From: Macrostomum lignano
Taxonomy: Eukaryota
Direction of reading: 5' to 3'
Length of the DNA: 64,000 nt
NCBI GenBank assembly: GCA_002269645.1
Contig: NIVC01000347.1
Coordinates: 186,001 to 250,000 of the forward strand
The translations under genes and the position numbers were made by a program. Shown piece by piece: positions 95 through 51,477 of the stretch. Below the pieces are notes generated by a model. It was not told the origin of the DNA and searched no databases. It saw nothing but the letters and a program-made list of their open reading frames with translations. How positions within the stretch are numbered: the stretch's first letter is position 1; each line of letters begins with the position of its first letter.

Positions 95-960
95 TACAGT
101 GGACTCTCGGAATCTCAGAACAGTGGACTCTGAGAATGTTACAATAGTCGACTCTCAGCATCTCAATAGCGGACACTCAGAATCTCAATAGTAGATCATC
201 AGTATCTCAATAGTGGACTCCAGCATCTCAATAATGAACTCTCAGCATCTCAATAGTGGACTCTCAGCATCTGTATAGTAGACTCCCAGTATCTCAATAG
301 TAGACTCCCAGTATCTCAATAGTAGACTCCCAGCATCTCAATAGTAGACTCCCAGTATCTCAATAGTGGACTCTCAGCATCTCAATAGTAGACTCTCAGC
401 ATCTCAATAGTAGCCTCTCTGCATCTCAATAGTAGCCTCTCAGCATCTCAATAGTAGACTCTCAGCATCTCAATAGTAGCCTCTCTGCATCTCAATAGTG
501 AACTCTCAGCATCTCAATAGTGGACTATTAGCATCTCAATAGCGTACACTCAGCATCGCACAATAGTGGACTCTCAGAATCTCGAGAATAGACTCTCAGA
601 ATCTCACAACAGTAGACTATCAGAATCTCAACAGTGGACTCTAAGAATCTCAATACTGGACTCTTAGAATCTCAATAGTAGGTTCTCAGAATCTCAATAG
701 TGGAATCTCAGAATCTCACAAAAGTGGACTCTCAGAATCTCAATAATGGACTCTCAAAATCTCAATAGTGGACTCTTAAAATCTCAATAGTGGACTATTA
801 AAATGTCACAATATTGGACTCTCTAAATCTGACAATAGTGGACTCAGCATCTCAATAGTGGACTAAGAATCTCTCAATGGAGGACTTTCAGACTCACAAT
901 AGTGGACTCTCAGACTCTCAAAGTAATGGTCCCTCAGAATCTTACAAAAGTGAGTAGACT
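95..960 (+). repeat. ~22-bp minisatellite (CTCAGCATCTCAATAGTAGACT), probably intronic
   Basis: Degenerate tandem copies ending shortly before the acceptor at 1012. Confidence 0.9.
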
Positions 961-1012
961 AGGAATCGAACTCAGGACACTATTCGGGCCCCGCTCCCTC
1001 CTCACCGCGCAG

Positions 1013-2495
1013 GAGCACAGCGAAGTTCACCACCCGGACAAGACTGTGGTCATTCAAAAAGTGGAAGAATTATTTCTGAACTGCCGAACAGACAGCGACA
1101 ATGGCGATGATGAAGAGCAGCAACAAAAGCAAGAGGAAGCTGACAATGATGAAGAGGAGGCTGCAACAGGCGCCGATGGCACTGACTACAGCAGAGATGA
1201 GGAATTCTCAACAAAGTGGACAACTAACGCTGGCTCTGTCGGCGGTGGGAAGCGAGCCTGGGCTAGCGAGAAGAACACCAATAACCAGCAGATGAAGCAT
1301 CAGCAGCAGCAGTTCAGTCGCAAACGCCAATTCGGAGCCGCTGGCCAATCGTCAGCAGTCTCGCTGATGCAGCCGGGCTTCAACCGTCGCCCAATTGGTG
1401 GCCCGATGCAGCCGGTGCATTTGATGCAGAAACGATTGCGGCCGAACTGGAGCCAAGGTCAAGGAGTTCGGCAACAGCAGTTTGGCGGCGTGATGCAGCC
1501 GGATCTGGTTGTTCGAGATAAGGGCGATTACGTCATCAGCGTTAGCCGAGGCGGCTTAGAGGCTCGGCTTCGGTTCGATCCGGCATTCTATTCGTCTGAA
1601 GCTGCCAGCCAAACTTTTAATACTCTGGCCACTGAGCTGGCGTGGGAGCAGCTGAAAACTCGGCCCAAGCCAGGTGGCAAAAACGAATCCACTGAGCCAA
1701 GGATGACGTACTGGGTTGGGCCGAAATATTCCTACGGCTCGGTGCACCTGCCCGAGAATTCTAATTGGCATCCAGCGCTGATGCAGATTAAACAGGATGT
1801 TGAACGGGCGCTTGAGGGTAAAGTGACGTTTAACGCCTGCTTGGCAATTCTGTACAGGTGAGTAGGATACTGGATAGCTAACTACATCGTCTCTGAACCA
1901 GCGCTGATAATCCCCTATAAACACCCCCAAAACACGTAAACTCGTTAATCCCTGATAAACCCCCGCAAAACTCGCTTGTCCCAGATAAACACCATAAAAC
2001 TCTCTAATCCGAGGTAAACACCTCCAAAACTCGCTAGTCCCTGATAAACAGCAGAAACTCGCTAATCCCAGATAAACACCCCCAAAATTCGCTAGTCTCT
2101 GATAAACACCCTGATAAACACACCTCAGAGACCACAACGACTCGATGCCGTGGCACTCCGACAACGAACGCGAGATGGGTTCGAATCCGGCCATCGCCAG
2201 CGTCAGTTTCGGCGCCAGTCGACTCTTTGAGTTGCGCCGTTTCGACGTCGCTCAGCAGGGCTTCGGCGGTGGCGGCGGCGGCATCGGCGGAGTGGTCTTC
2301 GGCCAACAGATTCAAGGATTCCGCTCCGTCCACGTGCCCCTGTCTGCCGGCTCTCTGCTGTACACCTGCGGCTCCATCCAGAAGGACTGGCAGCACAGGA
2401 TCGGCCGGCAGTCCGCCAGTTGCGGACCCAGGATTAATCTCACTTTCCGCACCATTGTGACCGGTTCGGGCGGTTCGAAACGGACTGGGAAATGA
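1013..2495 (+). CDS. ALKBH3: AlkB homolog 3-like Fe(II)/2-oxoglutarate dioxygenase, 5'-partial; join(1013..1857,2129..2495)
   Basis: Donor AG|GTGAGT at 1858 and acceptor CTCAG| at 2128 join in frame to LYRDHNDSMPWHSDNE. HxD (WHSD), distal His (WQHRI) and RINLTFR are present. The ALKBH3-type N-terminal segment VVRDKGDYVISVSRGG..LRFDPAF and PRMTYWVG..YSYG are also seen. An in-frame acceptor lies at 1011-1012. Confidence 0.9.
1895..2125 (+). repeat. Degenerate ~30-bp tandem repeat filling the ALKBH3 intron
   Basis: Recurrent AAACTCGCTA.TCCC.GATAAACACC. Confidence 0.75.
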
Positions 2496-2604: not shown

Positions 2605-3320
2605 GCTGGGCCAGCCTCCCAAATCCTCAGTTGCTGAGCCAGCCTCCTAAATCATCGCGCAGTTCCTGTGCCAGCCTCCCAGATCCTCAGTTGCTAAGCC
2701 AGCCTCCAAGATCCTCAGTTGCTGCGCCAGCCTCCCAGATCCTCAGTTGCTAAGCCAGCCTCCCAGATCCTCAGTTGCTGCGCCAGCCTCCCAGATCCTC
2801 AGTTGCTAAGCCAGCCTCCCAGATCCTCAGTTGCTGTGCCAGCCTCCCAAATCCTCAGTTGCTGGGCCAGCCTCCCAGATCCTCAGTTGCTAAGTCAGCC
2901 TCCCAGATCCTCAGTTGCTGGGCCAGCCTCCCAGATCCTCAGTTGCTAAGCCAGCCTCCCAAATCCTCAGTTGCTAAGCCAGCCTTCCAGATCCTCAGTT
3001 GCTGTGCCAGCCTCCCAGATCCTCAGTTGCTGGGCCAGCCTCCCAAATCCTCAGTTGCTCGGCCAGCCTCCCAGATCCTCAGTTGCTAAGTCAGCCTCCC
3101 AGATCCTCAGTTGCTGGGCCAGCCTCCCAGAGTGTCAGTTGCTGTGCCAGCCTCCCAGATCCTCAGTTGCTGGGCCAGCCTCCCAAATCCTCAGTTGCTG
3201 GGCCAGCCTCCCAGATCCTCAGTTGCTAAGCCAGCCTCCCAAATCCTCAGTTGCTAAGCCAGCCTTCCAGATCCTCAGTTGCTAAGCCAGCCTCCCAGAT
3301 CCTCAGTTGCTAGGCCGCTG
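2605..3320 (+). repeat. 28-bp minisatellite (GCCAGCCTCCCAGATCCTCAGTTGCTGG), array 1
   Basis: ~25 tandem units starting ~110 nt after the ALKBH3 stop. Confidence 0.95.
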
Positions 3321-4618: not shown

Positions 4619-5230
4619 CCAGTTGCTGTGCCATCCTCCCAGATCCTCATGCAGTTGCTGGGCCAGCCTCCCAGATCCTCAGTTGCTGGGCCAGCCTCCC
4701 AGATCCTCAGTTGCTGGGCCAGCCTCCCAGATCCTCAGTTGCTGGGCCAGCCTCCCAGATCCTCAGTTGCTGGGCCAGCCTCCCAGATCCTCAGTTGCTG
4801 GGCCAGCCTCCCAGATCCTCAGTTGCTGGTCAGCCGCCTCCCAGATCCTCAGCTGCTGGGTCAGCCTCCCAGATCCTCCTTTGCTGGGCCAGCCTCCCAG
4901 ATCCTCAGTTGCTGGGTCAGCCGCCTCCCAGATCCTCATTTGCTGGGCCAGCCTCCCAGATTCTCAGTTTCTGGGCCAGCCTCCCAGATCCTCAGTTGCT
5001 GCTCCAGCCTACCAGATCCTCAGTTGCTGGGCCAGCCTCCCAGATCCTCAGTTGCTAAGCCAGCCTCCCAGATCCTCAGTTGCTAAGCCAGCCTCCCAGA
5101 TCCTCAGTTGCTGGGCCAGCCTCCCAGATCCTCAGTTGCTAAGCCAGCCTCCCAGATCCTCAGTTGCTGGGCCAGCCTCCCAGATCCTCAGTTGCTGGGC
5201 CAGCCTCCCAGATCCTCAGTTGCTGGGCCA
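4619..5230 (+). repeat. 28-bp minisatellite, array 2
   Basis: Same unit, with diagnostic variants. Confidence 0.95.
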
Positions 5231-7349: not shown

Positions 7350-7917
7350 TGGTGGCCCGGCAACTGAGGAGCTGAGGCTGGCCCAGCAACTGAGGATCTG
7401 GTAGGCTGGAGCAGCAACTGAGGATTTGGGAGGCTGGCTCAGCAAATGAGGATCTGGGAGGCGGCTGACCCAGCAACTGAGGATCTGGGAGGCTGGCCCA
7501 GCAAAGGAGGATCTGGGAGGCTGACCCAGCAACTGAGGATCTGGGAGGCTGGCTCAGCAACTGAGGATCTGGGAGGCTGGCCCAGCAACTGAGGATCTGG
7601 GAGGCTGGCTCAGCAACTGAGGATCTGGGAGGCTGGCCCAGCAACTGAGGATCTGGGAGGCTGGCCCAGCAACTGAGGATCTGGGAGGCTGGCGCAGCAA
7701 CTGAGGATCTGGGAGGCTGGCTTAGCAACTGAGGATCTGGGAGGCGGCTGACCAGCAACTGAGGATCTGGGAGGCTGGCCCAGCAACTGAGGATCTGGGA
7801 GGCGGCTGACCAGCAACTGAGGATCTGGGAGGCTGGCCCAGCAACTGAGGATCTGGGAGGCTGGCCCAGCAACTGAGGATCTGGGAGGCTGGCCCAGCAA
7901 CTGAGGATCTGGGAGGC
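7350..7917 (-). repeat. 28-bp minisatellite, array 3 (inverted relative to array 2)
   Basis: Reverse-complement units. 7441-7530 is the exact reverse complement of 4855-4944. Confidence 0.95.
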
Positions 7918-8275
7918 TTGCAGTGGCAGTCATGTCTGACAAAGAAGTGCTTGAGTTTCCAGAGCCACGTTCAGTGCACGCCTAATAATCGGAGAGTATA
8001 AAGGACTCCCAATTTAATATCGGTTAATATCGAATTTTTTAAAAGAAAACATATCTAATATTGAGGCTTTGCACTTGATCGAAATCAGAGACGATATGCG
8101 GTTTGAAGCAAATGAGAACAGATGAACGGCATTCAAAAGTGGAAACGATGCTTGACTTCACTACGATCCCCAGAGATTGGGTCATTTGACGAGATGCCCA
8201 CTAAATGCTCGTATAATCATTAGAATTCTATCTTAGTAAGTGAAACTTATTGTAAAATCGGACTGTGTACAGTAG

Positions 8276-8900: not shown

Positions 8901-9409
8901 GTCTGGACATGTCTGGACACCCGGAGATTCTGCACCAGGAGAGCTGGCGGGGGCACAGATCTCTGTGTTTGGGTTTCTGTTCTCCAGAGTCAAAGATCTC
9001 CGGCCCGGAGATCCAACACGGAAAATTACGGGATTTTACGATCGCCTGCACGGATATCAGCAACCACGAAATAAGATAAGGTTAGAGATCGCCGCATCCT
9101 AGACTCTTCGGAGTGTTTTATCTTAGAAGCTTACTTCTAGCGCAGCTTAAAAGCTTATCTATCTAATAGCACATAGTACATTCCCATGCCTTGTATGCTC
9201 ATACAGCCATCAATCAAGTAGGGCTAAATTTAGGGTTGCATGGTCAGACTTGTGCATCATTTTTCGTCTCTCTGTACACAAGTCGAATGATTCGCACGCG
9301 ACAGTCAAGTCAATTTGCGATTTTCTTACTTTGAATTGGAGGGAATCTCCTGTTTTTTATTGGAACTGTATGCGGAATTATGGATTGACAACGGTTCACC
9401 TACCTCGGC

Positions 9410-9680
9410 GGTCTGGTGCCCCGTATGGAGGAGGGCCTCCGGCGTCGCGCAGAGGACTTGACTGGGCGGCCTTCCATTCGATCCGGGCCGTCCTCCAGTC
9501 CGAAGCGCTGCCCCGCCAGAGGGCTCGGCTGTGGCAGGCGGTGGTCGAAACCGTCCTGCTCTACAACGCCGAGACGTGGACGCTGACGGCTGTGCTGGAG
9601 CGGCAGTTGGACTCAGGGTTGCTCCGTGCGGCCTTTCGACCTGACGAGAGCGTCGGGACCGAGGCCCTGTACGATCGAGT
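9410..9680 (+). mobile_element. LINE (RTE-like) fragment, region C-terminal to RT
   Basis: WAAFHSIRAVL...LWQAVVETVLLYNAETWTLTAVLERQLD resembles the LLYGxETWTL post-RT motif. Confidence 0.65.
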
Positions 9681-10439
9681 TATTTTTCCCTGATCTGATG
9701 CATGACGGCCGCGAAATGTACCAGCTACAGTGAAGAACTTTATTTTCTCATGTGGAAAATGTCAATTCAAATGAACAAAGTTATTGACGTTTTTAGCGAT
9801 TTTTACCAACCATTTACATGTATGCTTCAATGAACATTGTTAAATTGTTAGGAGAAGTTAACTATACACAATAAAAAGATAATAATTTTCAACTTAATAA
9901 AACAAAATTAAAACTTGGTTTTTGCACTAGTGACGGAGATCTCCGAGGCGACAACAGATCGGGTTTAGGATCTCGGGATCTCGGAGACCCATAGCCGTTT
10001 GTAGTCTCCGAAAGTGATCTTAAACCCTTTAAAGTCTCCGATCGGCGATCCAAAACTGGCCTGAGCGTCGGAGATTCCATAAACCATAACACCGGTGAGT
10101 TCAGTCAAGGTCACGCCATAAACTCACTTCAACCTGCATTGCAGTATCTACACTATCGTCAATTTAGTCTCTTGGCAGAGCAGCATGAATTTTATACATA
10201 AATACATAAATGTTATTATATCCTTATGCTCACCTGGTTTACTTCCGTGTCGCCGTGGTCGTATAATGAGAGTGCAATCTAGCAGATCAGGGTGCGTAAG
10301 CTTATTAGTTCCCTATCTAAATTAGTCAACCTAATTCGCGCGTTTGATCTTGCCGCCAAATCCAACTGGAAACAGACTGTTAAACATTTACGACATCCCT
10401 GCGAACGAAATTATGTTTATGTATTAGGTTCAATCACAA

Positions 10440-13950: not shown

Positions 13951-14569
13951 GCCGGAAGGGTTACACACATGCTGTGTAACAACTTCAAAGAGGACTCCAG
14001 TTCAATATATTTATGAAAGAAAGTAATTTTCTATAGTTGATAAAGATATCGAATTGCTCGCAAAGGACAGACAATATTACCGGTAAGATTGTGCACTTTG
14101 CTTTGATTATATATGGACATTATTTGCTAGAAAAAATCTTTATTTACGATCAACAAGAGACTGTGGTAGGAAGGGTGAGATCTAGGAGAGATTGTGAGAG
14201 GAAGGGTGAGATTCGCTACTCACTCAAGTTATAAATTGCTGCAACAAGTGCGGGGTGATGTTGGGCTTGAAGTGGTGGCACAGATCGCATTCCTTCACCT
14301 ATACCGCTACCCCAGAGCCCCCATTGCACAATAAATAAATTGCGCCAGGAAGTGGCTGTGTTGCCAAGCAGCTCAGCCTGCCGAAGTGAGTCATACTGCG
14401 CTGCGTCAAACCCGAGTATTATGCTCTGGGCTTGATGTATGGGCTGGGGGCTGGAGCTGCTCCGGGCTTGCTGCGGCTTTGAGAGTGAGGGAGAAGAGAG
14501 AGGGGCTGATCGAGTGGCCACCAAATCTGATTAGCTCGCTGGGATAGCTCTGTGTATGTATGTGTCTAT

Positions 14570-17151
<2,582 letters not shown>

Positions 17152-17879
17152 GCTCAATTTTCAGGCCGAAATCTCACAGACTGAAATTTCGGGTAATTGT
17201 ACTGACGCAGGTGAAAACTGAAGCAATTTTTGGACTGTAGAAAAATAATCGTCTGAAATTTTGCGGCTATCAAACCGAGTTGCATTGTCTGTTGCCCAAG
17301 CAGAATTTCGCAAAGCCTTTATTAAAATCAGATTCAGGCTTTGAAAATTTCATGAAATCAGCGAATATTAATCCCCTGATGAGAAATTGTCGCCTCTAAT
17401 CTGCATAGTCTTTGTCGATAGATTAAACATTCGATTAAAACTGATTTCCGAATTCTAGAAAATCTTTCTTTTCAATTCCCAGCAACACGGAGGCTGGATG
17501 CGTCAGCCAGCACAAGCCCCCTCCCCTCAAAGCTTTAGCTGGATATATATGATGAGGCTGGGAAACTGGGGCAGAAATCGCTGGTAGAGGCTGGGATAAA
17601 GCTGCCCATGCAGCGGATGCAATCTGCAATCCAAGGCCGGCCTCAGAGAGCGAGTGTCTGTCTGCCTGACTTACCCGCCCTCTTCAAGCCGCGGTGTACA
17701 ATCGCGCGCTTTGAAAGCGGCAGGGCAGATGGAGATGCAGGACGCACTGCAGTTGCAGCGGACACCGAAGATAATGTTTCTCGCACTTCAGTCTTTTGTT
17801 TGTTTCAGACACTATGATTCAGGTGTGCTAGTGGAATATTTTGTCCGGGGAAGAAGTGAAAGGGTGAGAAGGAGATAGA

Positions 17880-19100
17880 GAGGATGAGATGATGGAAATA
17901 CAGAGGGTGAGAGTGAGGCAGAGAGGAAGAGAGGGAGATGGGGAGGGTGAGAGGGAGGCAGAGAGGAAGAGAGGGAGATGGGGAGGGTGAGAGGGAGGCA
18001 GAGAGGAAGAGAGGGAGATGGGGAGGGTGAGAGGGAGGCAGAGAGGAAGAGAGGGAGATGGGGAGGGTGAGAGGGAGGCAGAGAGGAAGAGAGGGAGATG
18101 GGGAGGGTGAGAGGGAGGCAGAGAGGAAGAGAGGGAGATGGGGAGGGTGAGAGGGAGGCAGAGAGGAAGAGAGGGAGATGGGGAGGGTGAGAGGGAGGCA
18201 GAGAGGAAGAGAGGGAGATGGGGAGGGTGAGAGGGAGGCAGAGAGGAAGAGAGGGAGATGGGGAGGGTGAGAGGGAGGCAGAGAGGAAGAGAGGGAGATG
18301 GGGAGGGTGAGAGGGAGGCAGAGAGGAAGAGAGGGAGATGGGGAGGGTGAGAGGGAGGCAGAGAGGAAGAGAGGGAGATGGGGAGGGTGAGAGGGAGGCA
18401 GAGAGGAAGAGAGGGAGATGGGGAGGGTGAGAGGGAGGCAGAGAGGAAGAGAGGGAGATGGGAGGGTGAGAGGGAGATAGAGAGGAAGAGAGGGAGATGG
18501 AGAGGGTGAGAGGGAGACAGAGAGGAAGAGAGGGAGATGGAGAGGGTGAGAGGGAGACAGAGAGGAAGAGAGGGAGATGGAGAGGGTGAGAGGGAGATAG
18601 AGAGGAAGAGAGGGAGATGGAGAGGGTGAGAGGGAGATAGAGAGGAAGAGAGGGAGATGGAGAGGGTGAGAGGGAGACAGAGAGGAAGAGAGGGAGATGG
18701 AGAGGGTGAGAGGGAGACAGAGAGGAAGAGAGGGAGATGGAGAGGGTGAGAGGGAGATAGAGAGGAAGAGAGGGAGATGGAGAGGGTGAGAGGGAGATAG
18801 AGAGGAAGAGAGGGAGATGGAGAGGGTGAGAGGGAGATAGAGAGGAAGAGAGGGAGATGGAGAGGGTGAGAGGGAGACAGAGAGGAAGAGAGGGAGATGG
18901 AGAGGGTGAGAGGGAGACAAATATGGTGAGAGGGAGACAGAGAGGAAGAGAGTGAGATGGAGAGGGTGAGAGGGAGACAAATATGGTGAGAGGGAGACAG
19001 AGAGGAAGAGAGGGAGATGGAGAGGGTGATGGGGAAGGCAGAGAGGATGGGGGGAGACAGAGAGGAAAAGAGGGCAATGGAGGGTGAGAGGGAGATGGAC
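17880..19100 (+). repeat. 40-bp purine-rich minisatellite (copy A; copy B at ~24050-25250)
   Basis: GGGAGGGTGAGAGGGAGGCAGAGAGGAAGAGAGGGAGATG units. Confidence 0.95.
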
Positions 19101-19852
19101 CGTGTGAGGGGAGCTTCTAGAAGGAGATGGAAGCGTGAGAAGCAGCCTGGAAAAGTAGAAATTGCGTTTGAAATCAGAACGCCTGATTCCCAGACCGGCT
19201 GCGCAGAGTAAATGACAGAGAAGGTCAAGTGGGATGGAGGGTGTGTCATGGCCAACCCCCCAGCCCCAGTGTAAGCAATTTCTGCTGAAGCAATTTCTGC
19301 AACAGAAAATCTCTGTTGCTGCTTTGGTGTAACTTTTAGTTTTCAGCGCCTTTTAGTTTTCAGTTCGGGACAGGCAGGACATGACTGGGATATGATTCAG
19401 AGGCCAAGAGGGAAATCCTTGAACGAGTTGGATGTTGCCCCCCGGATAGATGAGGTTCCGCGCACAGTCTTTACTGTTTATGTAATAACATCTATTTACT
19501 TGCACTTCTTTTTGAAAAGTTCTCAGTGCTCTGTTTTAATTTAATATTTGTTCTCAATTCTACGGGCGTAAATAACTTATTTGTTGAACTTTTCAAGATG
19601 CTTATTCATACACTTCTACGCTCTAAATCTGTTTTTCTATAGCACCTAACATCTTTAATATTTTTTGTGCAAGGCTTTAAGCTGCCAATCTTTAACCAAT
19701 CAGCGTGCTTCAACTCACGTTTTTAACTAATTATACGTACACATCTTTACTCAACACTGCTCAGTGCACCCCCAAAAGTAGCATATATATATATTGAAAT
19801 TATGTTGCAATAACTTCACTGCCAATATATTTGTTTTTAAACCCGAATAAAT

Positions 19853-19893
19853 AAACCCTGACGAAGGCCCAGTCTGGGCCGAAATATCGGTTT
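19853..19893 (+). ncRNA. Minimal type I hammerhead ribozyme, copy 1 (predicted cleavage after 19888)
   Basis: AAACC-CTGACGA-A-GGCCC(AGTCT)GGGCC-GAAA-TATC^GGTTT: CUGANGA and GAAA cores, 5-bp stem II, stem I AAACC/GGTTT, palindromic ATAT helix III, AUC triplet. Confidence 0.85.
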
Positions 19894-21218
19894 TTTTCGA
19901 ACATTCGACAACTGGTAACCTTCAATATCTTCCGAGTGCGTGGTTTGCAGTTTCAAACTGCCTTATGAATATCTGTACCCAGGACCGGACTATTATTGAG
20001 GCTCGCCATGTTTGTCAACAAAATATCTTCGTATACGAGCTATTCTCCGCCAAAAATCTACTTGGGATAAGCAAGAGTACTATTTCTGCAGCTGAATATT
20101 TAAGACGCACGACACTACTACGACTACGGCTACGACTACGACTGTACTACTACTACTCTACTACCACTACTACTACTACTGCAACTACTAGTGCTACTAC
20201 TACTGAAAATCTAGCTTCAACTGATCCGCAGTGCCCAGTCGCCTGTGACCAGGGGCTGTGCAGGCGGCGATCTGTGACCAGACGCCGCCAACTGCGACTA
20301 GTGGCCTGCCTGGCTACTTCAAATAACTGCTTACCAGTACGTCTCTACTACGACTACGCCTACGACTGCTCTACTACTACTCTACTAATACTTGTACTAC
20401 TACTACTTCCATTACTACTACTACGAGCTACTACTGCAACTACTAGTGCTACTACTACTGATAATCTAGCCTCAACTGATCTGCAGTGCCCAGTCGCCTG
20501 TGACCAGGGGCTGTGCAGGCGGCGATCTGTGACCAGACGCCGCCAACTGCGACTAGTGGCCTGCCTGGCTACTTCAAATAACTGCTTACCAGTACGTCTC
20601 TACTACGACTACGCCTACGACTGCTCTACTACTACTCTACTAATACTTGTACTACTACTACTTCCATTACTACTACTACGAGCTACTACTGCAACTACTA
20701 GTGCTACTACTACTGATAATCTAGCCTCAACTGATCTGCAGTGCCCAGTCGCCTGTGACCAGGGGCTGTGCAGGCGGCGATCTGTGACCAGACGCCGCCA
20801 ACTGCGACTAGTGGCCTGCCTGGCTACTCAATTTATTTACTGTTTATGTAATAACATCTATTTACTTGCACTTCTTTTTGAAAAGTTCTCAGTGCTCTGT
20901 TTTAATTTAATATTTGTTCTCAATTCTACGGGCGTAAATAACTTATTTGTTGAACTTTTCAAGATGCTTATTCATACACTTCTACGCTCTAAATCTGTTT
21001 TTCTATAGCACCTAACATCTTTAATATTTTTTGTGCAAGGCTTTAAGCTGCCAATCTTTAACCAATCAGCGTGCTTCAACTCACGTTTTTAACTAATTAT
21101 ACGTACACATCTTTACTCAACACTGCTCAGTGCACCCCCAAAAGTAGCATATATATATATTGAAATTATGTTACAATAACTTCACTGCCAATATATTTGT
21201 TTTTAAACCCGAATAAAT

Positions 21219-21259
21219 AAACCCTGACGAAGGCCCAGTCTGGGCCGAAATATCGGTTT
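21219..21259 (+). ncRNA. Minimal type I hammerhead ribozyme, copy 2 (predicted cleavage after 21254)
   Basis: Identical to copy 1, 1366 nt downstream. Confidence 0.85.
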
Positions 21260-22328
21260 TTTTCGAACATTCGACAACTGGTAACCTTCAATATCTTCCG
21301 AGTGCGTGGTTTGCAGTTTCAAACTGCCTTATGAATATCTGTACCCAGGACCGGACTATTATTGAGGCTCGCCATGTTTGTCAACAAAATATCTTCGTAT
21401 ACGAGCTATTCTCCGCCAAAAATCTACTTGGGATAAGCAAGAGTACTATTTCTGCAGCTGAATATTTAAGACGCACGACACTACTACGACTACGGCTACG
21501 ACTACGACTGTACTACTACTACTCTACTACCACTACTACTACTACTGCAACTACTAGTGCTACTACTACTGAAAATCTAGCTTCAACTGATCCGCAGTGC
21601 CCAGTCGCCTGTGACCAGGGGCTGTGCAGGCGGCGATCTGTGACCAGACGCCGCCAACTGCGACTAGTGGCCTGCCTGGCTACTTCAAATAACTGCTTAC
21701 CAGTACGTCTCTACTACGACTACGCCTACGACTGCTCTACTACTACTCTACTAATACTTGTACTACTACTACTTCCATTACTACTACTACGAGCTACTAC
21801 TGCAACTACTAGTGCTACTACTACTGATAATCTAGCCTCAACTGATCTGCAGTGCCCAGTCGCCTGTGACCAGGGGCTGTGCAGGCGGCGATCTGTGACC
21901 AGACGCCGCCAACTGCGACTAGTGGCCTGCCTGGCTACTCAATTTATTTACTGTTTATGTAATAACATCTATTTACTTGCACTTCTTTTTGAAAAGTTCT
22001 CAGTGCTCTGTTTTAATTTAATATTTGTTCTCAATTCTACGGGCGTAAATAACTTATTTGTTGAACTTTTCAAGATGCTTATTCATACACTTCTACGCTC
22101 TAAATCTGTTTTTCTATAGCACCTAACATCTTTAATATTTTTTGTGCAAGGCTTTAAGCTGCCAATCTTTAACCAATCAGCGTGCTTCAACTCACGTTTT
22201 TAACTAATTATACGTACACATCTTTACTCAACACTGCTCAGTGCACCCCAAAAGTAGCATATATATATATTGAAATTATGTTACAATAACTTCACTGCCA
22301 ATATATTTGTTTTTAAACCCGAATAAAT

Positions 22329-22369
22329 AAACCCTGACGAAGGCCCAGTCTGGGCCGAAATATCGGTTT
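22329..22369 (+). ncRNA. Minimal type I hammerhead ribozyme, copy 3 (predicted cleavage after 22364)
   Basis: Identical to copy 1, 1110 nt downstream of copy 2. Confidence 0.85.
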
Positions 22370-22445
22370 TTTTCGAACATTCGACAACTGGTAACCTTCA
22401 ATATCTTCCGAGTGCGTGGTTTGCAGTTTCAAACTGCCTTATGAA

Positions 22446-22449
<4 letters not shown>

Positions 22450-22510
<61 letters not shown>

Positions 22511-22627
22511 GTCTATCTATCTATCTATCTGTCTATCTATCTATCTGTCTATCTGTCTATCTATCTATCTATCTATCTGTCTATCTATCTATCTATCTAT
22601 CTGTCTATCTATCTATCTGTCTATCTG

Positions 22628-22698
<71 letters not shown>

Positions 22699-22701
22699 GT
22701 C

Positions 22702-22750
<49 letters not shown>

Positions 22751-22751
22751 C

Positions 22752-22799
<48 letters not shown>

Positions 22800-22852
22800 C
22801 CTATCTATCTATCTATCTATCTATCTATTTATCTATCTATTTATCTATCTAC

Positions 22853-22894
<42 letters not shown>

Positions 22895-22916
22895 GTCTGT
22901 CTATCTATCTATCTAC

Positions 22917-22959
<43 letters not shown>

Positions 22960-22964
22960 CCTAC

Positions 22965-23030
<66 letters not shown>

Positions 23031-23143
23031 GTCTATCTATCTATCTATCTGTCTATCTATCTATCTGTCTATCTGTCTATCTATCTATCTATCTATCTGT
23101 CTATCTATCTATCTATCTGTCTATCTATCTATCTGTCTATCTG

Positions 23144-23218
<75 letters not shown>

Positions 23219-23219
23219 G

Positions 23220-23302
<83 letters not shown>

Positions 23303-25620
23303 GCTCAATTTTCAGGCCGAAATCTCACAGACTGAAATTTCGGGTAATTGTACTGACGCAGGTGAAAACTGAAGCAATTTTTGGACTGTAGAAAAATAAT
23401 CGTCTGAAATTTTGCGGCTATCAAACCGAGTTGCATTGTCTGTTGCCCAAGCAGAATTTCGCAAAGCCTTTATTAAAATCAGATTCAGGCTTTGAAAATT
23501 TCATGAAATCAGCGAATATTAATCCCCTGATGAGAAATTGTCGCCTCTAATCTGCATAGTCTTTGTCGATAGATTAAACATTCGATTAAAACTGATTTCC
23601 GAATTCTAGAAAATCTTTCTTTTCAATTCCCAGCAACACGGAGGCTGGATGCGTCAGCCAGCACAAGCCCCCTCCCCTCAAAGCTTTAGCTGGATATATA
23701 TGATGAGGCTGGGAAACTGGGGCAGAAATCGCTGGTAGAGGCTGGGATAAAGCTGCCCATGCAGCGGATGCAATCTGCAATCCAAGGCCGGCCTCAGAGA
23801 GCGAGTGTCTGTCTGCCTGACTTACCCGCCCTCTTCAAGCCGCGGTGTACAATCGCGCGCTTTGAAAGCGGCAGGGCAGATGGAGATGCAGGACGCACTG
23901 CAGTTGCAGCGGACACCGAAGATAATGTTTCTCGCACTTCAGTCTTTTGTTTGTTTCAGACACTATGATTCAGGTGTGCTAGTGGAATATTTTGTCCGGG
24001 GAAGAAGTGAAAGGGTGAGAAGGAGATAGAGAGGATGAGATGATGGAAATACAGAGGGTGAGAGTGAGGCAGAGAGGAAGAGAGGGAGATGGGGAGGGTG
24101 AGAGGGAGGCAGAGAGGAAGAGAGGGAGATGGGGAGGGTGAGAGGGAGGCAGAGAGGAAGAGAGGGAGATGGGGAGGGTGAGAGGGAGGCAGAGAGGAAG
24201 AGAGGGAGATGGGGAGGGTGAGAGGGAGGCAGAGAGGAAGAGAGGGAGATGGGGAGGGTGAGAGGGAGGCAGAGAGGAAGAGAGGGAGATGGGGAGGGTG
24301 AGAGGGAGGCAGAGAGGAAGAGAGGGAGATGGGGAGGGTGAGAGGGAGGCAGAGAGGAAGAGAGGGAGATGGGGAGGGTGAGAGGGAGGCAGAGAGGAAG
24401 AGAGGGAGATGGGGAGGGTGAGAGGGAGGCAGAGAGGAAGAGAGGGAGATGGGGAGGGTGAGAGGGAGGCAGAGAGGAAGAGAGGGAGATGGGGAGGGTG
24501 AGAGGGAGGCAGAGAGGAAGAGAGGGAGATGGGGAGGGTGAGAGGGAGGCAGAGAGGAAGAGAGGGAGATGGGGAGGGTGAGAGGGAGGCAGAGAGGAAG
24601 AGAGGGAGATGGGGAGGGTGAGAGGGAGATAGAGAGGAAGAGAGGGAGATGGAGAGGGTGAGAGGGAGACAGAGAGGAAGAGAGGGAGATGGAGAGGGTG
24701 AGAGGGAGACAGAGAGGAAGAGAGGGAGATGGAGAGGGTGAGAGGGAGATAGAGAGGAAGAGAGGGAGATGGAGAGGGTGAGAGGGAGATAGAGAGGAAG
24801 AGAGGGAGATGGAGAGGGTGAGAGGGAGACAGAGAGGAAGAGAGGGAGATGGAGAGGGTGAGAGGGAGACAGAGAGGAAGAGAGGGAGATGGAGAGGGTG
24901 AGAGGGAGATAGAGAGGAAGAGAGGGAGATGGAGAGGGTGAGAGGGAGATAGAGAGGAAGAGAGGGAGATGGAGAGGGTGAGAGGGAGATAGAGAGGAAG
25001 AGAGGGAGATGGAGAGGGTGAGAGGGAGACAGAGAGGAAGAGAGGGAGATGGAGAGGGTGAGAGGGAGACAAATATGGTGAGAGGGAGACAGAGAGGAAG
25101 AGAGTGAGATGGAGAGGGTGAGAGGGAGACAAATATGGTGAGAGGGAGACAGAGAGGAAGAGAGGGAGATGGAGAGGGTGATGGGGAAGGCAGAGAGGAT
25201 GGGGGGAGACAGAGAGGAAAAGAGGGCAATGGAGGGTGAGAGGGAGATGGACCGTGTGAGGGGAGCTTCTAGAAGGAGATGGAAGCGTGAGAAGCAGCCT
25301 GGAAAAGTAGAAATTGCGTTTGAAATCAGAACGCCTGATTCCCAGACCGGCTGCGCAGAGTAAATGACAGAGAAGGTCAAGTGGGATGGAGGGTGTGTCA
25401 TGGCCAACCCCCAGCCCCAGTGTAAGCAATTTCTGCTGAAGCAATTTCTGCAACAGAAAATCTCTGTTGCTGCTTTGGTGTAACTTTTAGTTTTCAGCGC
25501 CTTTTAGTTTTCAGTTCGGGACAGGCAGGACATGACTGGGATATGATTCAGAGGCCAAGAGGGAAATCCTTGAACGAGTTGGATGTTGCCCCCCGGATAG
25601 ATGAGGTTCCGCGCACAGTC
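22450..25620 (+). repeat. Copy B of the ~3.15-kb direct segmental duplication
   Basis: Both copies end GTTCCGCGCACAGTC. Copy B continues into unique sequence at 25621. Confidence 0.9.
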
Positions 25621-25829: not shown

Positions 25830-26620
25830 CTCTGTCTCCCTCTCACCCTGTCTGTCTCCCTCTCACCCTGTCTATCTCCCTCTCAACCTGTCTATCTCCC
25901 TCTCACCCTGTCTATCTCCCTCTCACCCTGTCTATCTCCCTCTCACCCTGTCTATCTCCCTCTCACCCTGTCTATCTCCCTCTCACCCTGTCTGTCTCCC
26001 TCTCAACCTGTCTATCTCCCTCTCACCCTGTCTGTCTCCCTCTCAACCTGTCTATCTCCCTCTCACCCTGTCTGTCTCCCTCTCAACCTGTCTATCTCCC
26101 TCTCACCCTGCCTGTCTCCCTCTCAACCTGTCTATCTCCCTCTCACCCTGTCTGTCTCCCTCTCAACCTGTATATCTCCCTCTCACCCTGTCTGTCTCCC
26201 TCTCACCCTGTCTATCTCCCTCTCACCCTGTCTGTCTCCCTCTCACCCTGTCTATCTCCGTCTCACCCTGTCTGTCTCCCTCTCAACCTGTCTGTCTCCC
26301 TCTCACCCTGTCTGTCTCTCTCTCACCCTGTCTGTCTCCCTCTCACCCTGTCTGTCTCCCTCTCAACCTGTCTGTCTCCCCCTCACCCTGTCTGTCTCCC
26401 TCTCACCCTGTCTGTCTCCCTCTCACCCTGTCTATCTCCCTCTCACCCTGTCTGTCTCCCTCTCACCCTGTCTGTCTCCCTCTCACCCTGTCTGTCTCCC
26501 TCTCACCCTCTCTGTCTCCCTCTCACCCTGTCTGTCTCCCTCTCACCCTGTCTGTCTCTCTCTCACCCTCTCTGTCTCCCTCTCACCCTGTCTGTCTCCC
26601 TCTCACCCTCTCTGTCTCCC
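25830..26620 (+). repeat. 20-bp pyrimidine-rich minisatellite (CTGTCTCCCTCTCACCCTGT)
   Basis: Tandem units, near reverse complement of half of the 40-bp purine unit. Confidence 0.95.
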
Positions 26621-26834
26621 TGTCTTCTTTTCGAAAAGAAAGCCTCAACTTACAAGTTGGTACTTATGAAATTTCTCTATTGCAAATTCTGTTACAAAAT
26701 ACATTGTCATGTCGGCATCTCAGTCTCATCTCTTTACTTAGTTGTTTTTTTGTTTAAATATTCCCTATACGGAAGAGGAACTAATCCTTCATCGTTGGAT
26801 TTGAGTTCCAAGCTGCACCTGGAAAGGCGTCACT

Positions 26835-26952: not shown

Positions 26953-42504
<15,552 letters not shown>

Positions 42505-46764: not shown

Positions 46765-47785
46765 ACTGAGGATCTGGGAGGCTGGCCCAGCAACTGAGGA
46801 TCTGGGAGGCTGGCCCAGCAACTGAGGATTTGGGAGGCTGGCCCAGCAACTGAGGATCTGGGAGGCTGGCCCAGCAACTGAGGATCTGGGAGGCTGGCTC
46901 AGCAACTGAGGATCTGGGAGGCTGGCTCAGCAACTGAGGATCTGGGAGGCTGGCCCAGCAACTGAAGATCTGGGAGGCTGGCCCAGCAACTGAGAATCTG
47001 GGAGGCTGGCCCAGCAACTGAGGATCTGGGAGGCTGGCTCAGCAACTGAGGATCTGGGAGGCTGGCTCAGCAACTGAGGATCTGGGAGGCTGGCTCAGCA
47101 ACTGAGGATCTGGGAGGCTGGCCCAGCAACTGAGAATCTGGGAGGCTGGCCCAGCAACTGAGAATCTGGGAGGCTGGCCCAGCAACTGAGAATCTGGGAG
47201 GCTGGCCCAGCAACTGAGGATCTGGGAGGCTGGCCCAGCAACTGAGGATCTGGGAGGCTGGCCTAGCAACTGAGGATCTGGGAGGCTGGCCCAGCAACTG
47301 AGGATCTGGGAGGCTGGCCCAGCAACTGAGGATCTGGGAGGCTGGCTCAGCAACTGAGGATCTGGGAGGCTGGCTCAGCAACTGAGGATCTGGGAGGCTG
47401 GCTCAGCAACTGAGGATCTGGGAGGCTGGCCCAGCAACTGAGGATCTGGGAGGCTGGCTCAGCAACTGAGGATTTGGGAGGCTGGCCCAGCAACTGAGGA
47501 TCTGGGAGGCTGGCCCAGCAACTGAGGATCTGGGAGGCTGGCCCAGCAACTGAGGATCTGGGAGGCTGGCTCAGCAACTGAGGATCTGGGAGGCTGGCCC
47601 AGCAACTGAGGATCTGGGAGGCTGGCCCAGCAACTGAGGATCTGGGAGGCTGGCCCAGCAACTGAGGATCTGGGAGGCTGGCCCAGCAACTGAAGATCTG
47701 GGAGGCTGGCCCAGCAACTGAGGATCTGGGAGGCTGGCTCAGCAACTGAGGATCTGGGAGGCTGGCACAGCAATTGAGGATCTGG
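46765..47785 (-). repeat. 28-bp minisatellite, array 4, directly downstream of the ATF2-like stop
   Basis: Same unit as arrays 1-3, ~36 copies. Confidence 0.95.
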
Positions 47786-47830
47786 GGTCGTCCTCCATCA
47801 GTCCCTGCAACAGCCAGCCAGTCCAATAAA

Positions 47831-50800
47831 TCACTCAGACAGGACATCATCATCCTCATCAACTGGGTGTCCGGCGTTGGACAGAACGAAGTGGCCGGCA
47901 ACGTTGGCGGATCCGTGAAACGGTTGGACGTCCATCAGGGAGATGCCGTGGCCGCCGACTCCTCCTGTGTTGAGCACTATGGAGGTTGGCGCGGTTGACA
48001 CGGTAGGCAGCACATTGCTGCCACCAGAAGCGGTGGAGGCTGCTGCAGCGGCCGCTGCTAGCAGGGCCTCCACCCCGGGCTGCTGGCTGCACGATCTGTG
48101 CTGCAGGAGCGCCTGACGGAGTGCCTGCCGGTAGCATGGTTCAGTGATCTGGTAGCTACGGGTTCATGGATCTGGTGGCTAAAGGAATCAAGGATCTGGT
48201 AGCTAAAGGAATCAAGGATCTGGTAGCTAAAGGAATCAAGGATCTGGCAGCTAAAGGAATCAAGGATCTGGTAGCTAAAGGAATCAAGGATCTGGTAGCT
48301 AAAGGAACCAAGGATCTGGCAGCTAAAGGAATCAAGGATCTGGTAGCTAAAGGAATCAAGGATCTGGCAGCTAAAGGAATCAAGGATCTGGCAGCTAAAG
48401 GAATCAAGGATCCGGCAGCTAAAGGAATCAAGGATCTGGTAGCTAAAGGAATCAAGGATCTGGTAGCTAAAGGAATCAAGTATCTGGCAGCTAAAGGAAT
48501 CAAGGATCTGGTAGCTAAAGGAATCAAGGATCTGGTAGATAAAAGAATCAAGGATCTGGCAGCTAAAGGAATCAAGGATCTGGTAGCTAAAGGAATCAAG
48601 GATCTGGCAGCTAAAGGAATCAAGGATCTGGCAGCTAAAGGAACCAAGGATCTGGCAGCTAAAGGAACCAAGGATCTGGCAGCTAAAGGAATCAAGGATC
48701 TGGCAGCTAAAGGAATCAAGGATCTGGTAGCTAAAGGAATCAAGGATCTGGTAGCTAAAGGAATCAAGGATCTGGCAGCTAAAGGAATCAAGGATCTGGT
48801 AGCTAAAGGAACCAAGGATCTGGCAGCTAAAGGAATCAAGGATCTGGTAGCTAAAGGAATCAAGGATCTGGTAGCTAAAGGAACCAAGGATCTGGAAGCT
48901 AAAGGAATCAAGGATCTGGCAGCTAAAGGAATCAAGGATCTGGCAGCTAAAGGAACCAAGGATCTGGCAGCTAAAGGAATCAAGGATCTGGTAGCTAAAG
49001 GAACCAAGGATCTGGCAGCTAAAGGAATCAAGGATCTGGCAGCTAAAGGAATCAAGGATCTGGCAGCTAAAGGAATCAAGGATCTGGTAGCTAAAGGAAC
49101 CAAGGATCTGGCAGCTAAAGGAACCAAGGATCTGGCAGCTAAAGGAATCAAGGATCTGGCAGCTAAAGGAATCAAGGATCTGGTAGCTAAAGGAACCAAG
49201 GATCTGGCAGCTAACTCACCTGGCTCTCATTTCGAACCCGCCTCAGCTCCTCAGCCAGCCGCCGCTTGTCATTCTCCAGCTCCTGGTTGCGAGCCTCCAG
49301 CTCTTCGATGTGCTTCTTTCGCTTCTCCCGGCACCTCGCTGCAGCCGCCCGGTTCCTCTCCAGCAGAAGTTTGCGTCGTTCGTCGTTGGACCCGCTGACT
49401 CCGCCGCCGCCGCCACCAATACTGCTGCCTCCTCCGGTGTCAGACAGAGACGAAGTGGTTGACTCGGCTGGCCGCTTCATGCTGACGTGCCCGACACCGG
49501 AGGCTGGGGCGGCGGCGGCGGTGAGACCGCCACGCATTCGATCGATCTCATCTGCTGGCAAATTGCTCATCACTTTTTTCCGCAGATTCTCCATCACCTC
49601 AGCTTTGCCTGGTTCCTGTTTCACTTGATGCTGCTGCTGCTGCTGAGATGATGTCGAAGCTGACGCAGCAGCGGTAAGAGTGGAACTGGCTGCTAGCTGG
49701 GTCAGCAAGTTGCTGTTTGCCGCTGCAGCAGCTGCTGATGTCACAGACGAAGTAGCAGATGCGGTCGTACTGGTTGAGGATGTTGAGTTGGGTTGTACCA
49801 GGAAGCTCTTGCCGCCGGGAAGGGTGACCAGGAATGACTGCTGAGCCTGGTTGGCCATCTGCTGCACCTGGGTGTTTGGGATACGAGGAGTCTGATATGA
49901 TCTGAGTAGGGTGAGCATCAATCTGAATCAGATCTGAGTAGGGTGAGCATCAATCTGAGTCAGAACTGAATAGGGTGAGCATCAATCAGAGTCAGATCTG
50001 AGTAGGGTGAGCATCAATCAGAGTCAGATCTGAGTAGGGTGAGCATCAATCAGAGTCAGATCTGAGTAGGGTGAGCATCAATCAGAGTCAGAACTGAGTA
50101 GGGTGAGCATCAATCAGAGTCAGATCTGAGTAGGGTGAGCATCAATCAGAGTCAGATCTGAGTAGGGTGAGCATCAATCAGAGTCAGATCTGAGTAGGGT
50201 GAGCATCAATCAGAGTCAGAACTGAGTAGGGTGAGCATCAATCAGAGTCAGATCTGAGTAGGGTGAGCATCAATCAGAGTCAGATCTGAGTAGGGTGAGC
50301 ATCAATCAGAGTCAGAACTGAGTAGGGTGAGCATCAATCAGAGTCAGAACTGAGTAGGGTGAGCATCAATCAGAGTCAGAACTGAGTAGGGTGAGCATCA
50401 ATCAGAGTCAGAACTGAGTAGGGTGAGCATCAATCAGAGTCAGATCTGAGTAGGGTGAGCATCAATCTGAGTCAGATCTGAGTAGGGTGAGCATCAATCA
50501 GAGTCAGAACTGAGTAGGGTGAGCATCAATCAGAGTCAGAACTGAGGTGAACTCACTTGAAGAATCTGCTGCTGCAGTTGGTACTGAAGTGCTTGACTTT
50601 GCAACATCTCGGAGGGACCCGGCTTTTGTTGCTGTTCAATTTGCTGCGGTTGCTGCTGCTGCTGTAGAAGTTGCTGCTCCTGCTGCTGCTGCTGCTGCTG
50701 CAATAGCAATTTCTGCTGAGCAATATAATTAGCTCCAGATTTAATATCTACTAAAGAACCGCGAAGAGCTCTGCTTGAGGCGGCCGGTTGCTGGGTAGCA

Positions 50801-51477
50801 ACAGTCGGTCTGAGCACAGTTGATAAAGATGCAGCCGCAGAAGCTGTGGCGGCGGTGGCTGCAACGGAACTGGAGGTGATGGTGTTGGCCAGCAGCTGCA
50901 GTCCGGGCACCTCGCTAGGACCAGACGAAGCCACGTCCAATCTTGGCATCTTTGTCGGCGACAGATCCAACGGGGTACTTCTACTAGCCGATGACAGGAC
51001 CTCCTTGATCATGGGGGTGCTGATTTTGGCATTGAGGATATCTGGCGTGGGAACAGACTCTATCCAGGAGGCGGAGTTAGCCGCAGCAGACGCTGCTGCC
51101 GCTGATGAAGAGGCTGTCGGCTGCTGGTGCTTCTGCAGGTTAAACTGCTTGAACGAAGCCTCAAACGGGTTGGTGCTGCCCCCGCCGTTGCCTCCGTTCG
51201 ATGGTACGGCAGAAAGATTCAATAAGCCGGTGAGGCCCATGGAACCGGTGTCCAGGGTGACCACAGGTGATAGGGAAATCACCGGCGTGTCCAGAACTTT
51301 ACCCCGAAGCTCCTTCATTGGCGACGGAGTGTCCAGCGACACGGTGGCGGTGGCTTCGGGTTTGGTGTAAAGCGGCAGTGTGGAGTGCACCTTCAATCGG
51401 TGCTGAGTCAACTCCATATTGGAGCTGAAAGATTTGCCGCAGGTTTCACAGGCTAAACCAGCAGATTTGGAAGCCAT
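47831..51477 (-). CDS. ATF2: ATF2/ATF7/CREB5-like transcription factor (N-terminal C2H2 finger, C-terminal bZIP), 628 aa; complement(join(47831..48124,49220..49891,50557..51477))
   Basis: CETCGKSF..HRLKVH finger, DTPSP phospho-motif, NPFEASFK, basic region ERRKLLLERNRAAAARCREKRK. The zipper continues across a phase-0 intron as RNESQ|ALRQALLQHRSC (cf. ATF2 HKDC). Both donors are GTGAGT. Confidence 0.9.
48145..49213 (+). repeat. 24-bp minisatellite (GATCTGGYAGCTAAAGGAAYCAAG) filling ATF2-like intron 2
   Basis: ~44 units covering nearly all of intron 48125-49219. Confidence 0.96.
49901..50545 (+). repeat. 32-bp minisatellite (CTGAGTAGGGTGAGCATCAATCAGAGTCAGAT) filling ATF2-like intron 1
   Basis: 20 units covering nearly all of intron 49892-50556. 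Confidence 0.96.

Follow-up and report, generated by a model that had tools for sequence, protein, structure and literature searches.

A hammerhead-bearing repeat family of Macrostomum lignano, set in (TATC)n microsatellites and flanked at two of four loci by kilobase-long target duplications: a candidate non-autonomous Penelope-like element

How does a head-to-tail array of nearly identical, kilobase-sized units come to lie in a simple repeat, with kilobases of its surroundings present on both sides? This question is raised by a locus in the flatworm Macrostomum lignano. We analyzed 64,000 nt of the forward strand of contig NIVC01000347.1 (assembly GCA_002269645.1, positions 186,001–250,000), which we call the window, and the repeat family whose array fills window positions 19470–22450 is called M. 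A previous sequence-only reading took the array for a retrozyme-like multimer, left either by rolling reverse transcription of a circular RNA or as a Penelope-type partial tandem. M is a young family that is dispersed to at least four loci. With moderate confidence, we read it as a non-autonomous retroelement of the Penelope-like element (PLE) type, in which target-primed reverse transcription (TPRT) begun in (TATC)n leaves partial tandems and kilobase-long target-site duplications.

Repeat finding places copies of M in register at 19470, 20836 and 21947 (spacings of 1366 and 1111), with 100% identity over reference pieces of 300 and 205 nt. The array starts with a 5′-truncated unit (19470–19974, + strand), which is the 3′ terminal 505 nt of M and has a blunt left junction. 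It is followed by two full units of 1366 nt (19975–21340, +) and 1110 nt (21341–22450, +), and this order of truncated and full units upholds the partial-tandem alternative. In BLAST, the units match each other at 99.6–99.8% over 505–1108 nt, and a base-by-base comparison leaves just three differences in all. First, G19807 corresponds to A21173 and A22283. Second, a run of five C (19769–19773) corresponds to a run of four (22246–22249). Third, the first full unit has an extra 255-bp block; Tandem Repeats Finder (TRF) gives 2.7 copies of a 255-bp subrepeat at 20143–20828 in this unit, and 1.7 copies are present at 21509–21942 in the second. These are the G/A difference, the 1-nt indel and the internal duplication that had been described beforehand, so that description stands. 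The 1110-nt unit ends with ...ccttatgaatatc, of which 5 nt, 'tatct', are common to the microsatellite that follows. An inverted repeat, GCAGTTT-C-AAACTGC (22424–22438, +), lies 12 nt before the array 3′ end and recurs at 19948–19962 and 21314–21328; it may be a candidate 3′ recognition hairpin, and it is absent from the predicted minimum free energy (MFE) structure of the last 70 nt. Apart from satellites, no long near-identical repeats occur in the window other than the M array and a 3.17-kb duplication that flanks it, and a chance origin of the two is excluded.

Three further loci (L001, L002 and L003), on three contigs of the same assembly, were reached via three GenBank proteins from the M open reading frame (ORF). 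The sequences flanking the window array are absent from all three, and therefore they are different loci from that of the window. The family comparison covers these four loci, with six array ends and 19 units. All 19 units are at least 99.5% identical, which bears out the youth proposed for the family, and units measure 1110–1876 nt, depending on how many copies of the 255-bp subrepeat they hold (2 to 5). L001 consists of (TCTA)n, a 1063-nt fragment, (TCTA)n, an identical fragment with three full units, and (TATC)n. L002 consists of (ATCT)n followed twice over by a 251-nt fragment, one unit and (TATC)n. L003 consists of (TATC)n, 373 bp of unique sequence, a 7-nt filler, a truncated unit with six full units (five of ~1621 nt and one of 1876), (TATC)n and the 373 bp again. 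L001 and L002 are thus microsatellite–M–microsatellite–M–microsatellite layouts with identical left junctions. Unit lengths are mixed within the arrays of the window (1366, 1110), L001 and L002. One full unit of L001 is interrupted by a hAT-like miniature inverted-repeat transposable element (MITE) of 1.2 kb (L001 7513–8744), whose terminal inverted repeats start CAGTGTTGGGCAAGTTAC and which is flanked by an 8-bp target duplication, CTTACCAG. Since this MITE sits in an M unit, at least one M copy is older than a DNA-transposon insertion.

The two sides of the arrays behave differently. On the right, 6/6 array ends at the four loci stop at one nucleotide, that of the 1110-nt unit, and continue with (tatc)n in constant phase, despite eight further 5-nt matches to the microsatellite within the unit, one of them of 6 nt. 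On the left, the junctions differ at 4/4 loci and show 0–3 nt of microhomology or the 7-nt filler. The internal unit joins are seamless in 13 of 13 cases (...gaatatc|tgtaccc), each array is a 5′-truncated unit followed by one or more full units, and the insertion target is a (TATC)n microsatellite at all four loci. The permuted ends expected for the multimer are replaced by one invariant 3′ end and variable 5′ truncation. This combination argues for 3′-primed copying from a preferred start rather than random entry into a circle.

The target itself is recorded in the flanks. A (TCTA)n microsatellite, T1, forms the pre-existing target at 14565–17151 (+; TRF), and its last ~852 bp (16300–17151) belong to the first copy of a direct duplication of 3170 bp that brackets the insert. 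This first copy (16300–19469, +) opens with 852 bp of (TCTA)n, followed by 709 unique bp, a minisatellite of 40-mers that spans 1205 bp, and another 404 unique bp. The second copy (22451–25620, +) begins directly at the array 3′ end with a (TATC)n microsatellite, T2 (22451–23302), and continues with the same 709, 1205 and 404 bp. The alignment of 16299–19469 with 22446–25620 shows 99.75% identity over 3176 columns, and beyond the microsatellite part, two homopolymer indels (18459/24611 and 19256/25407) are the sole differences. Over its full length, T2 repeats the pattern of variant units in the last ~850 bp of T1 unit for unit. From 25621, past the second copy, the DNA is unrelated and unique, and this run-on sequence shows the uninterrupted target. 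Neither the (TATC)n target nor the 3.17-kb duplication (16300–19469 = 22451–25620) had been seen in the sequence-only reading. The arrangement is repeated at L003, where the downstream 825-bp microsatellite shares 824 of 825 bases with the terminal part of the upstream array, and the 373 bp beyond it are duplicated at 100%, giving a duplication of 1.2 kb in all. By these alignments, duplicated target flanks M at two of four loci (1.2 kb at L003 and 3.2 kb in the window) and starts in the microsatellite at both. At L001 and L002 a duplication would be invisible, because both flanks are microsatellite.

Other origins of these flanks were considered. A (TATC)n tail carried by M is ruled out by the T1 pattern in T2 and by the 824/825 match at L003; since both downstream arrays replicate the upstream target array, the (TATC)n that follows M is target DNA. 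A duplication older than the M insertion would be unparsimonious, as M would then have hit the exact breakpoint in two unrelated places. Alternatively, M could have been duplicated in tandem together with its target and the upstream M lost later; this is possible, but takes two events per locus at two loci. Regarding the target array itself, T1 has a higher-order pattern in which GTCT variant units repeat every ~52 units (~208 bp), as if it had grown by unequal exchange of ~200-bp blocks. The duplicated minisatellite is also part of a larger structure: the GA-rich 40-bp repeat at 24012–25217 has its reverse complement as a 20-bp minisatellite at 25831–26621, and the two make up the arms of an imperfect palindrome, each ~800 nt long and 82% complementary to the other, with a spacer of ~640 bp. 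It is in this spacer that the window duplication has its second breakpoint (25620|25621), and the palindrome may have aided opening of the second strand there.

Each window unit also contains a hammerhead motif, AAACC-CUGACGA-A-GGCCCAGUCUGGGCC-GAAA-UA-UC|GGUUU. The copies are located at 19853–19893, 21219–21259 and 22329–22369 (all +), with predicted cleavage after C19888, C21254 and C22364, the last 86 nt before the array 3′ end. In all three, the catalytic boxes CUGACGA and GAAA stand in type I order with U16.1 and a cleavable C17. Helix I (AAACC/GGUUU) has 5 bp, and helix II (GGCCCA/UGGGCC) has 6 bp and begins with a G10.1–C11.1 pair. An unpaired A follows CUGACGA, between positions 9 and 10.1. 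Positions 15.2–16.2 are palindromic (A15.1-U-A-U16.1, AUAU) and provide no real helix III, which is a dimer design. In the MFE fold of a 77-nt context, the catalytic boxes are the two strands of an internal loop enclosed by helices I and II; in RNAcofold of two motif copies, the helix II strands are paired between the molecules and no hammerhead dimer is formed, an outcome that we take as uninformative. Across the 64-kb window, a descriptor written for the minimal hammerhead ribozyme (min-HHR) architecture has no hits other than the three M copies, and it finds nothing in 400 dinucleotide-preserving shuffles. Judged by this control, the motif is far beyond chance. The Rfam hammerhead families (Hammerhead_1, _3, _II, HH9 and HH10) give no match at gathering score in the whole window. 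We draw nothing from this null result, since helix III, present in canonical hammerheads, is missing from minimal motifs (PMC4209133).

Min-HHRs in the terminal repeats of PLEs were defined by Cervera and de la Peña (PMC4209133). Flatworm PLE motifs, from Schistosoma, have a long helix II, a helix I of 4–5 bp and an unpaired base 5′ of helix II (PMC4209133). The base between 9 and 10.1, the G10.1–C11.1 pair and the palindromic 15.2–16.2 are listed there as features additional to those in the authors' own search descriptor (PMC4209133), and the M motif has all of these. Each M unit therefore bears a putative minimal type I hammerhead of the PLE type, with predicted activity. This modifies two earlier statements. 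The resemblance to retrozymes holds for the head-to-tail non-coding multimer with a hammerhead motif, but the motif is of the minimal PLE type and not canonical. Likewise, both ends of the insert do lie mid-unit, off the sites 19888|19889, 21254|21255 and 22364|22365, but the right end at 22450 is the fixed 3′ end of the family (6/6). Weak mir-34-like matches within M (21154–21197 and 22264–22307, − strand; 16.8 bits, E = 4.6) are far under gathering score and were judged to be chance.

The coding content of M is poor. A six-frame scan of the window finds no motifs of a reverse transcriptase (RT) or endonuclease, and tblastn with four Schistosoma PLE RT–endonuclease proteins (supplement of PMC6515669) gives a best E of 0.84. 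A low-complexity ORF of 347 aa (19965–21008, +) crosses unit boundaries, and a version of 262 aa is present at 21331–22119. The long ORF has no Pfam family, which completes the agreement with the earlier statement that the insert lacks a recognizable RT or endonuclease. Among 5.8 billion proteins it has one relative, a hypothetical protein of M. lignano whose 90% cluster comprises three GenBank proteins, and all three sit on other M copies. The window ORFs of 262 and 347 aa have no exact-match protein record. The M ORF is probably not coding. However this may be, GenBank gene models overlie M in sense at three loci. The annotation is based on the transcriptome, and repeat-derived transcripts were left out of it (PMC5730564); the sense models give indirect support for transcription of M. 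For example, the model BOX15_Mlig001316g2 (561 aa; L002 10001–13567) covers two M copies and the (TATC)n between them, and the DNA of this locus has no direct translation to the annotated product, which suggests read-through, spliced transcripts of M arrays.

From this anatomy and the literature we infer that M spread as RNA, and with it an RNA intermediate, a PLE partner, ribozyme activity, an order of nicks and a role of the hammerhead, in the following scheme. Sense M transcripts would have a minimal type I hammerhead close to their 3′ end, at a distance of 86 nt. An RT acting in trans, most likely from a PLE, would prime cDNA on the nicked (GATA)n bottom strand of (TATC)n. The M RNA would be held at the target either by its terminal UAUCU, the 5-nt overlap 'tatct', or by a read-through (UAUC)n tail, should transcription run on into the repeat that follows every genomic M copy. 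Copying would span more than one unit and end early, producing a 5′-truncated unit followed by full units. The top strand would be opened downstream, 0.4 kb past the microsatellite at L003 and 2.3 kb past it in the window. Finally, fill-in between both openings would duplicate 1.2–3.2 kb of target on either side of the insert.

This scheme fits what is known of PLEs: their copies are often 5′-truncated and arranged as partial tandems (pseudo-LTRs), their terminal repeats hold a hammerhead, and they insert preferentially into microsatellites (PMC8557442). An autonomous and non-autonomous PLE pair inserted de novo into (C)n in mutation-accumulation lines of Chlamydomonas (PMC9977147). Compared with Cercyon/Perere of Schistosoma (PMC4209133) and Chlamys-N4_cRei (PMC9977147), M shares the min-HHR form, with the extra base before helix II, long helix II, short helix I and palindromic 15.2–16.2. 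It also shares the 5′-truncated upstream copy followed by full copies, the fixed 3′ end with variable 5′ truncation, and the insertion into a microsatellite. Taken together, the features of M make up the structural signature of PLEs as given in PMC8557442. In contrast, M has no RT or GIY-YIG ORF, its unit is only 1.1–1.9 kb, and its arrays reach up to seven full units. The target of M is (TATC)n, whereas those of PLEs are (TA)n, (CA)n or (C)n, and its flanking duplications of 1.2 and 3.2 kb differ from the short variable duplications and 30–40 bp 'tails' of PLEs. M is not an autonomous PLE, because it lacks the ORF; it appears to work like a non-autonomous one, which would depend on an autonomous partner.

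Simple-repeat targeting has parallels in other retroelements. Kojima and Fujiwara reportedly described the microsatellite-specific non-LTR retrotransposons Waldo, Mino, Kibi and Koshi. The Athena and Coprina PLEs are primed by telomere repeats (PMC8557442). M is similar to both groups in targeting simple repeats, plausibly by pairing of the RNA 3′ end with the nicked strand. These elements are autonomous, whereas M is not, and its pairing is deduced from the 5-nt overlap or a hypothetical tail. For the duplications, the nearest case is the long interspersed element (LINE) Dualen-4b_cRei, whose de novo insertions in the same Chlamydomonas lines have flanking duplications with a median of ~0.9 kb (PMC9977147). 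These are a direct precedent for duplications at the kilobase scale, and those of M (1.2 and 3.2 kb) are as long or longer. Dualen-4b_cRei differs from M in being an autonomous LINE of a green alga with two endonucleases, no hammerhead and no start in a microsatellite (PMC9977147).

Several points weigh against the PLE-type reading. No PLE or other RT was found in ~130 kb (the window and L001–L003) by motif scan and tblastn, and no PLE of M. lignano is named in the literature searched. Kilobase-scale target duplications are not described for PLEs in that literature. In Rfam, a search of window positions 19000–22600 at E ≤ 10 gives no hammerhead, a null result that is equally uninformative for a minimal motif. 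There is no covariation to draw on because the 19 copies are near-identical, nor is there another sign of selection on the ribozyme, and in vitro cleavage by PLE min-HHRs is poor (PMC4209133). The identical left junctions at L001 and L002 indicate that unequal exchange at the DNA level also amplifies M. The comparison covers only four loci, all from long-read assemblies with residual homopolymer errors. A route through DNA alone yields an identical geometry.

In this DNA-only route, which is possible but which we consider unlikely, strand invasion starts from a break or a stalled fork within (TATC)n, enters the (TATC)n beside an M array elsewhere and copies leftwards into M. A non-homologous switch back to the sister chromatid downstream of the break follows, by break-induced replication or by fork stalling and template switching/microhomology-mediated break-induced replication (FoSTeS/MMBIR). 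This produces a templated insertion within a tandem duplication, without requiring M to be a retroelement. The observed geometry is exactly that of a tandem duplication whose junction holds an insert, and the constant boundary between M and (TATC)n would simply have been copied from the donor. The left junctions, blunt, with 1–3 nt of microhomology or with a 7-nt filler that is M-like, agree with such a switch, and the mixed unit lengths are as expected when a heterogeneous donor array is copied. Unequal exchange is evident at L001 and L002, and the second breakpoint in the window lies in the palindrome spacer, a likely fragile site. However, no palindrome is present at the second breakpoint of L003, the other (TCTA)n arrays of the window show no comparable duplication, and donor flank beyond M is found at 0/4 loci. 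The route also leaves a hammerhead-bearing passenger with the full PLE signature unexplained.

The next alternative is the rolling circle, in which a unit RNA excised by the hammerhead is ligated to a circle of 1.1–1.6 kb and reverse transcribed repeatedly into a permuted multimer. An idea of this kind has been put forward for PLEs (PMC4209133), and the hammerhead in every unit, the 13 seamless joins and the 5 of 6 full L003 units of ~1621 nt, as from one template copied repeatedly, are in its favor. The six array ends at one position, despite the eight other 5-nt matches to the target, disfavor it, because a circle has no 3′ end to explain one start. A homology of only 5 nt to (TATC)n is weak for strict targeting, and min-HHRs cleave poorly (PMC4209133). 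Copying of one circle is further disfavored by the 255-bp length difference in the window array (1366 and 1110) and by the mixed arrays of L001 and L002, and this part of the sequence-only reading is not supported. We regard the rolling circle as improbable; it is a sub-case of the RNA model that is neither needed nor favored.

Circles bring in the animal retrozymes, which the preprint of Li et al. (2026; 10.64898/2026.07.22.740005) relates to PLE terminal repeats. Compared with the non-LTR retrozymes of Cervera and de la Peña 2020 (PMC7229834), M is alike in consisting of non-coding units joined head to tail, in having a type I hammerhead in each of them, in its AT-rich backbone and in a proposed dependence on PLE machinery. 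The retrozyme hammerheads are canonical type I motifs with loop–loop contacts, set apart from the minimal PLE form (PMC7229834), whereas that of M is minimal, with an open helix I, no loop 1 and no helix III. Retrozyme monomers are typically ~300 bp (PMC7229834), within ~170–400 bp, and consensus lengths range over 51–972 bp (10.64898/2026.07.22.740005), in contrast to the M units of 1110–1876 nt; the remark that M would be large for a retrozyme was correct. Circular RNA has been demonstrated for retrozymes, whereas circles of M are hypothetical. The microsatellite target and kilobase-scale target duplications of M are features not described for retrozymes. As far as its predicted motif and units go, M lacks two defining features of described animal retrozymes, the canonical hammerhead and the monomer of a few hundred bp.

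An assembly artefact, in which mis-joined haplotypes or repeats in a noisy long-read assembly created the duplication or multimer, is very improbable. The genome of M. lignano is highly repetitive and its DV1 assembly redundant (PMC5730564), and the 3.17-kb copies differ just by homopolymer indels typical of consensus errors. Against this, an equal architecture recurs at an unrelated locus on another contig (L003), and there is no sequence similarity at 19469|19470 to mislead an assembler; for these two reasons we consider the artefact unlikely, and the window has no N gaps. Least credible of all is that M is either an ordinary tandem host gene encoding a Thr/Cys-rich protein or a simple satellite, with a functionless hammerhead-like motif: an ORF of 262–561 aa does run through the units, annotated as a hypothetical protein at three loci, and the 255-bp subrepeat is divisible by three, but the low-complexity ORF has a start that spans the unit junction, no Pfam family and no homologue off M copies, and four unrelated loci, 5′ truncation, target duplications and a motif so far beyond chance are atypical of a gene or satellite.

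The surroundings of the array are rich in simple sequence. The M array lies ~4.5 kb upstream of the start codon of a TASK/sup-9-like two-pore potassium (K2P) channel gene (26990–42504, +), with exons at ~26990–27114, 29579–29800, 36936–37030, 40190–40410 and 41725–42504 and introns packed with micro- and minisatellites. Three coding remnants are present at 839–2492 (+), 49211–51477 (−) and 9250–9693 (+): exons of an ALKBH-like 2OG-Fe(II) oxygenase, an ATF2-like gene whose product has C2H2-finger and bZIP domains, and a C-terminal piece of a LINE reverse transcriptase (...LLYNAETWTLT...), respectively. A 28-bp minisatellite family occurs four times (2605–3311, 4620–5230, 7353–7918 and 46765–47786) in both orientations with 89–95% identity. 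Over the 64 kb, TRF gives 50 tandem-repeat rows with a score of at least 200, some of them overlapping.

A connection of retrozymes with PLE terminal repeats, and the idea that copying can exceed one unit, have already been published (PMC4209133; preprint 10.64898/2026.07.22.740005). New here are the M family and its size, the strict targeting of (TATC)n and the recurrent kilobase-long target duplication. Going further, we suggest only tentatively that a hammerhead-bearing, non-autonomous PLE-type element often duplicates 1–3 kb of its target, always from (TATC)n. If this is true, either kilobases separate the priming nick from the opening of the second strand, or the element integrates at a replication fork that has stalled in the repeat; the target-site duplications would exceed the ~0.9-kb median of the longest ones in the literature searched, and animal 'retrozymes' would be extended to units of 1.1–1.9 kb in a laboratory flatworm with transgenesis. 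The integration, partial tandems, microsatellite preference and hammerhead role of PLEs are open questions (PMC8557442). M offers a clean natural data set for them, with few, near-identical, recent copies, junctions resolved to the base, a fixed 3′ end and a single microsatellite motif, and the duplicated target at two of four loci records the positions of both strand openings. Transgenesis and RNA interference are established in M. lignano, and spread by RNA or DNA, the ribozyme and circles are directly testable there. If the kilobase duplications stem from integration, such elements would feed segmental duplication near genes.

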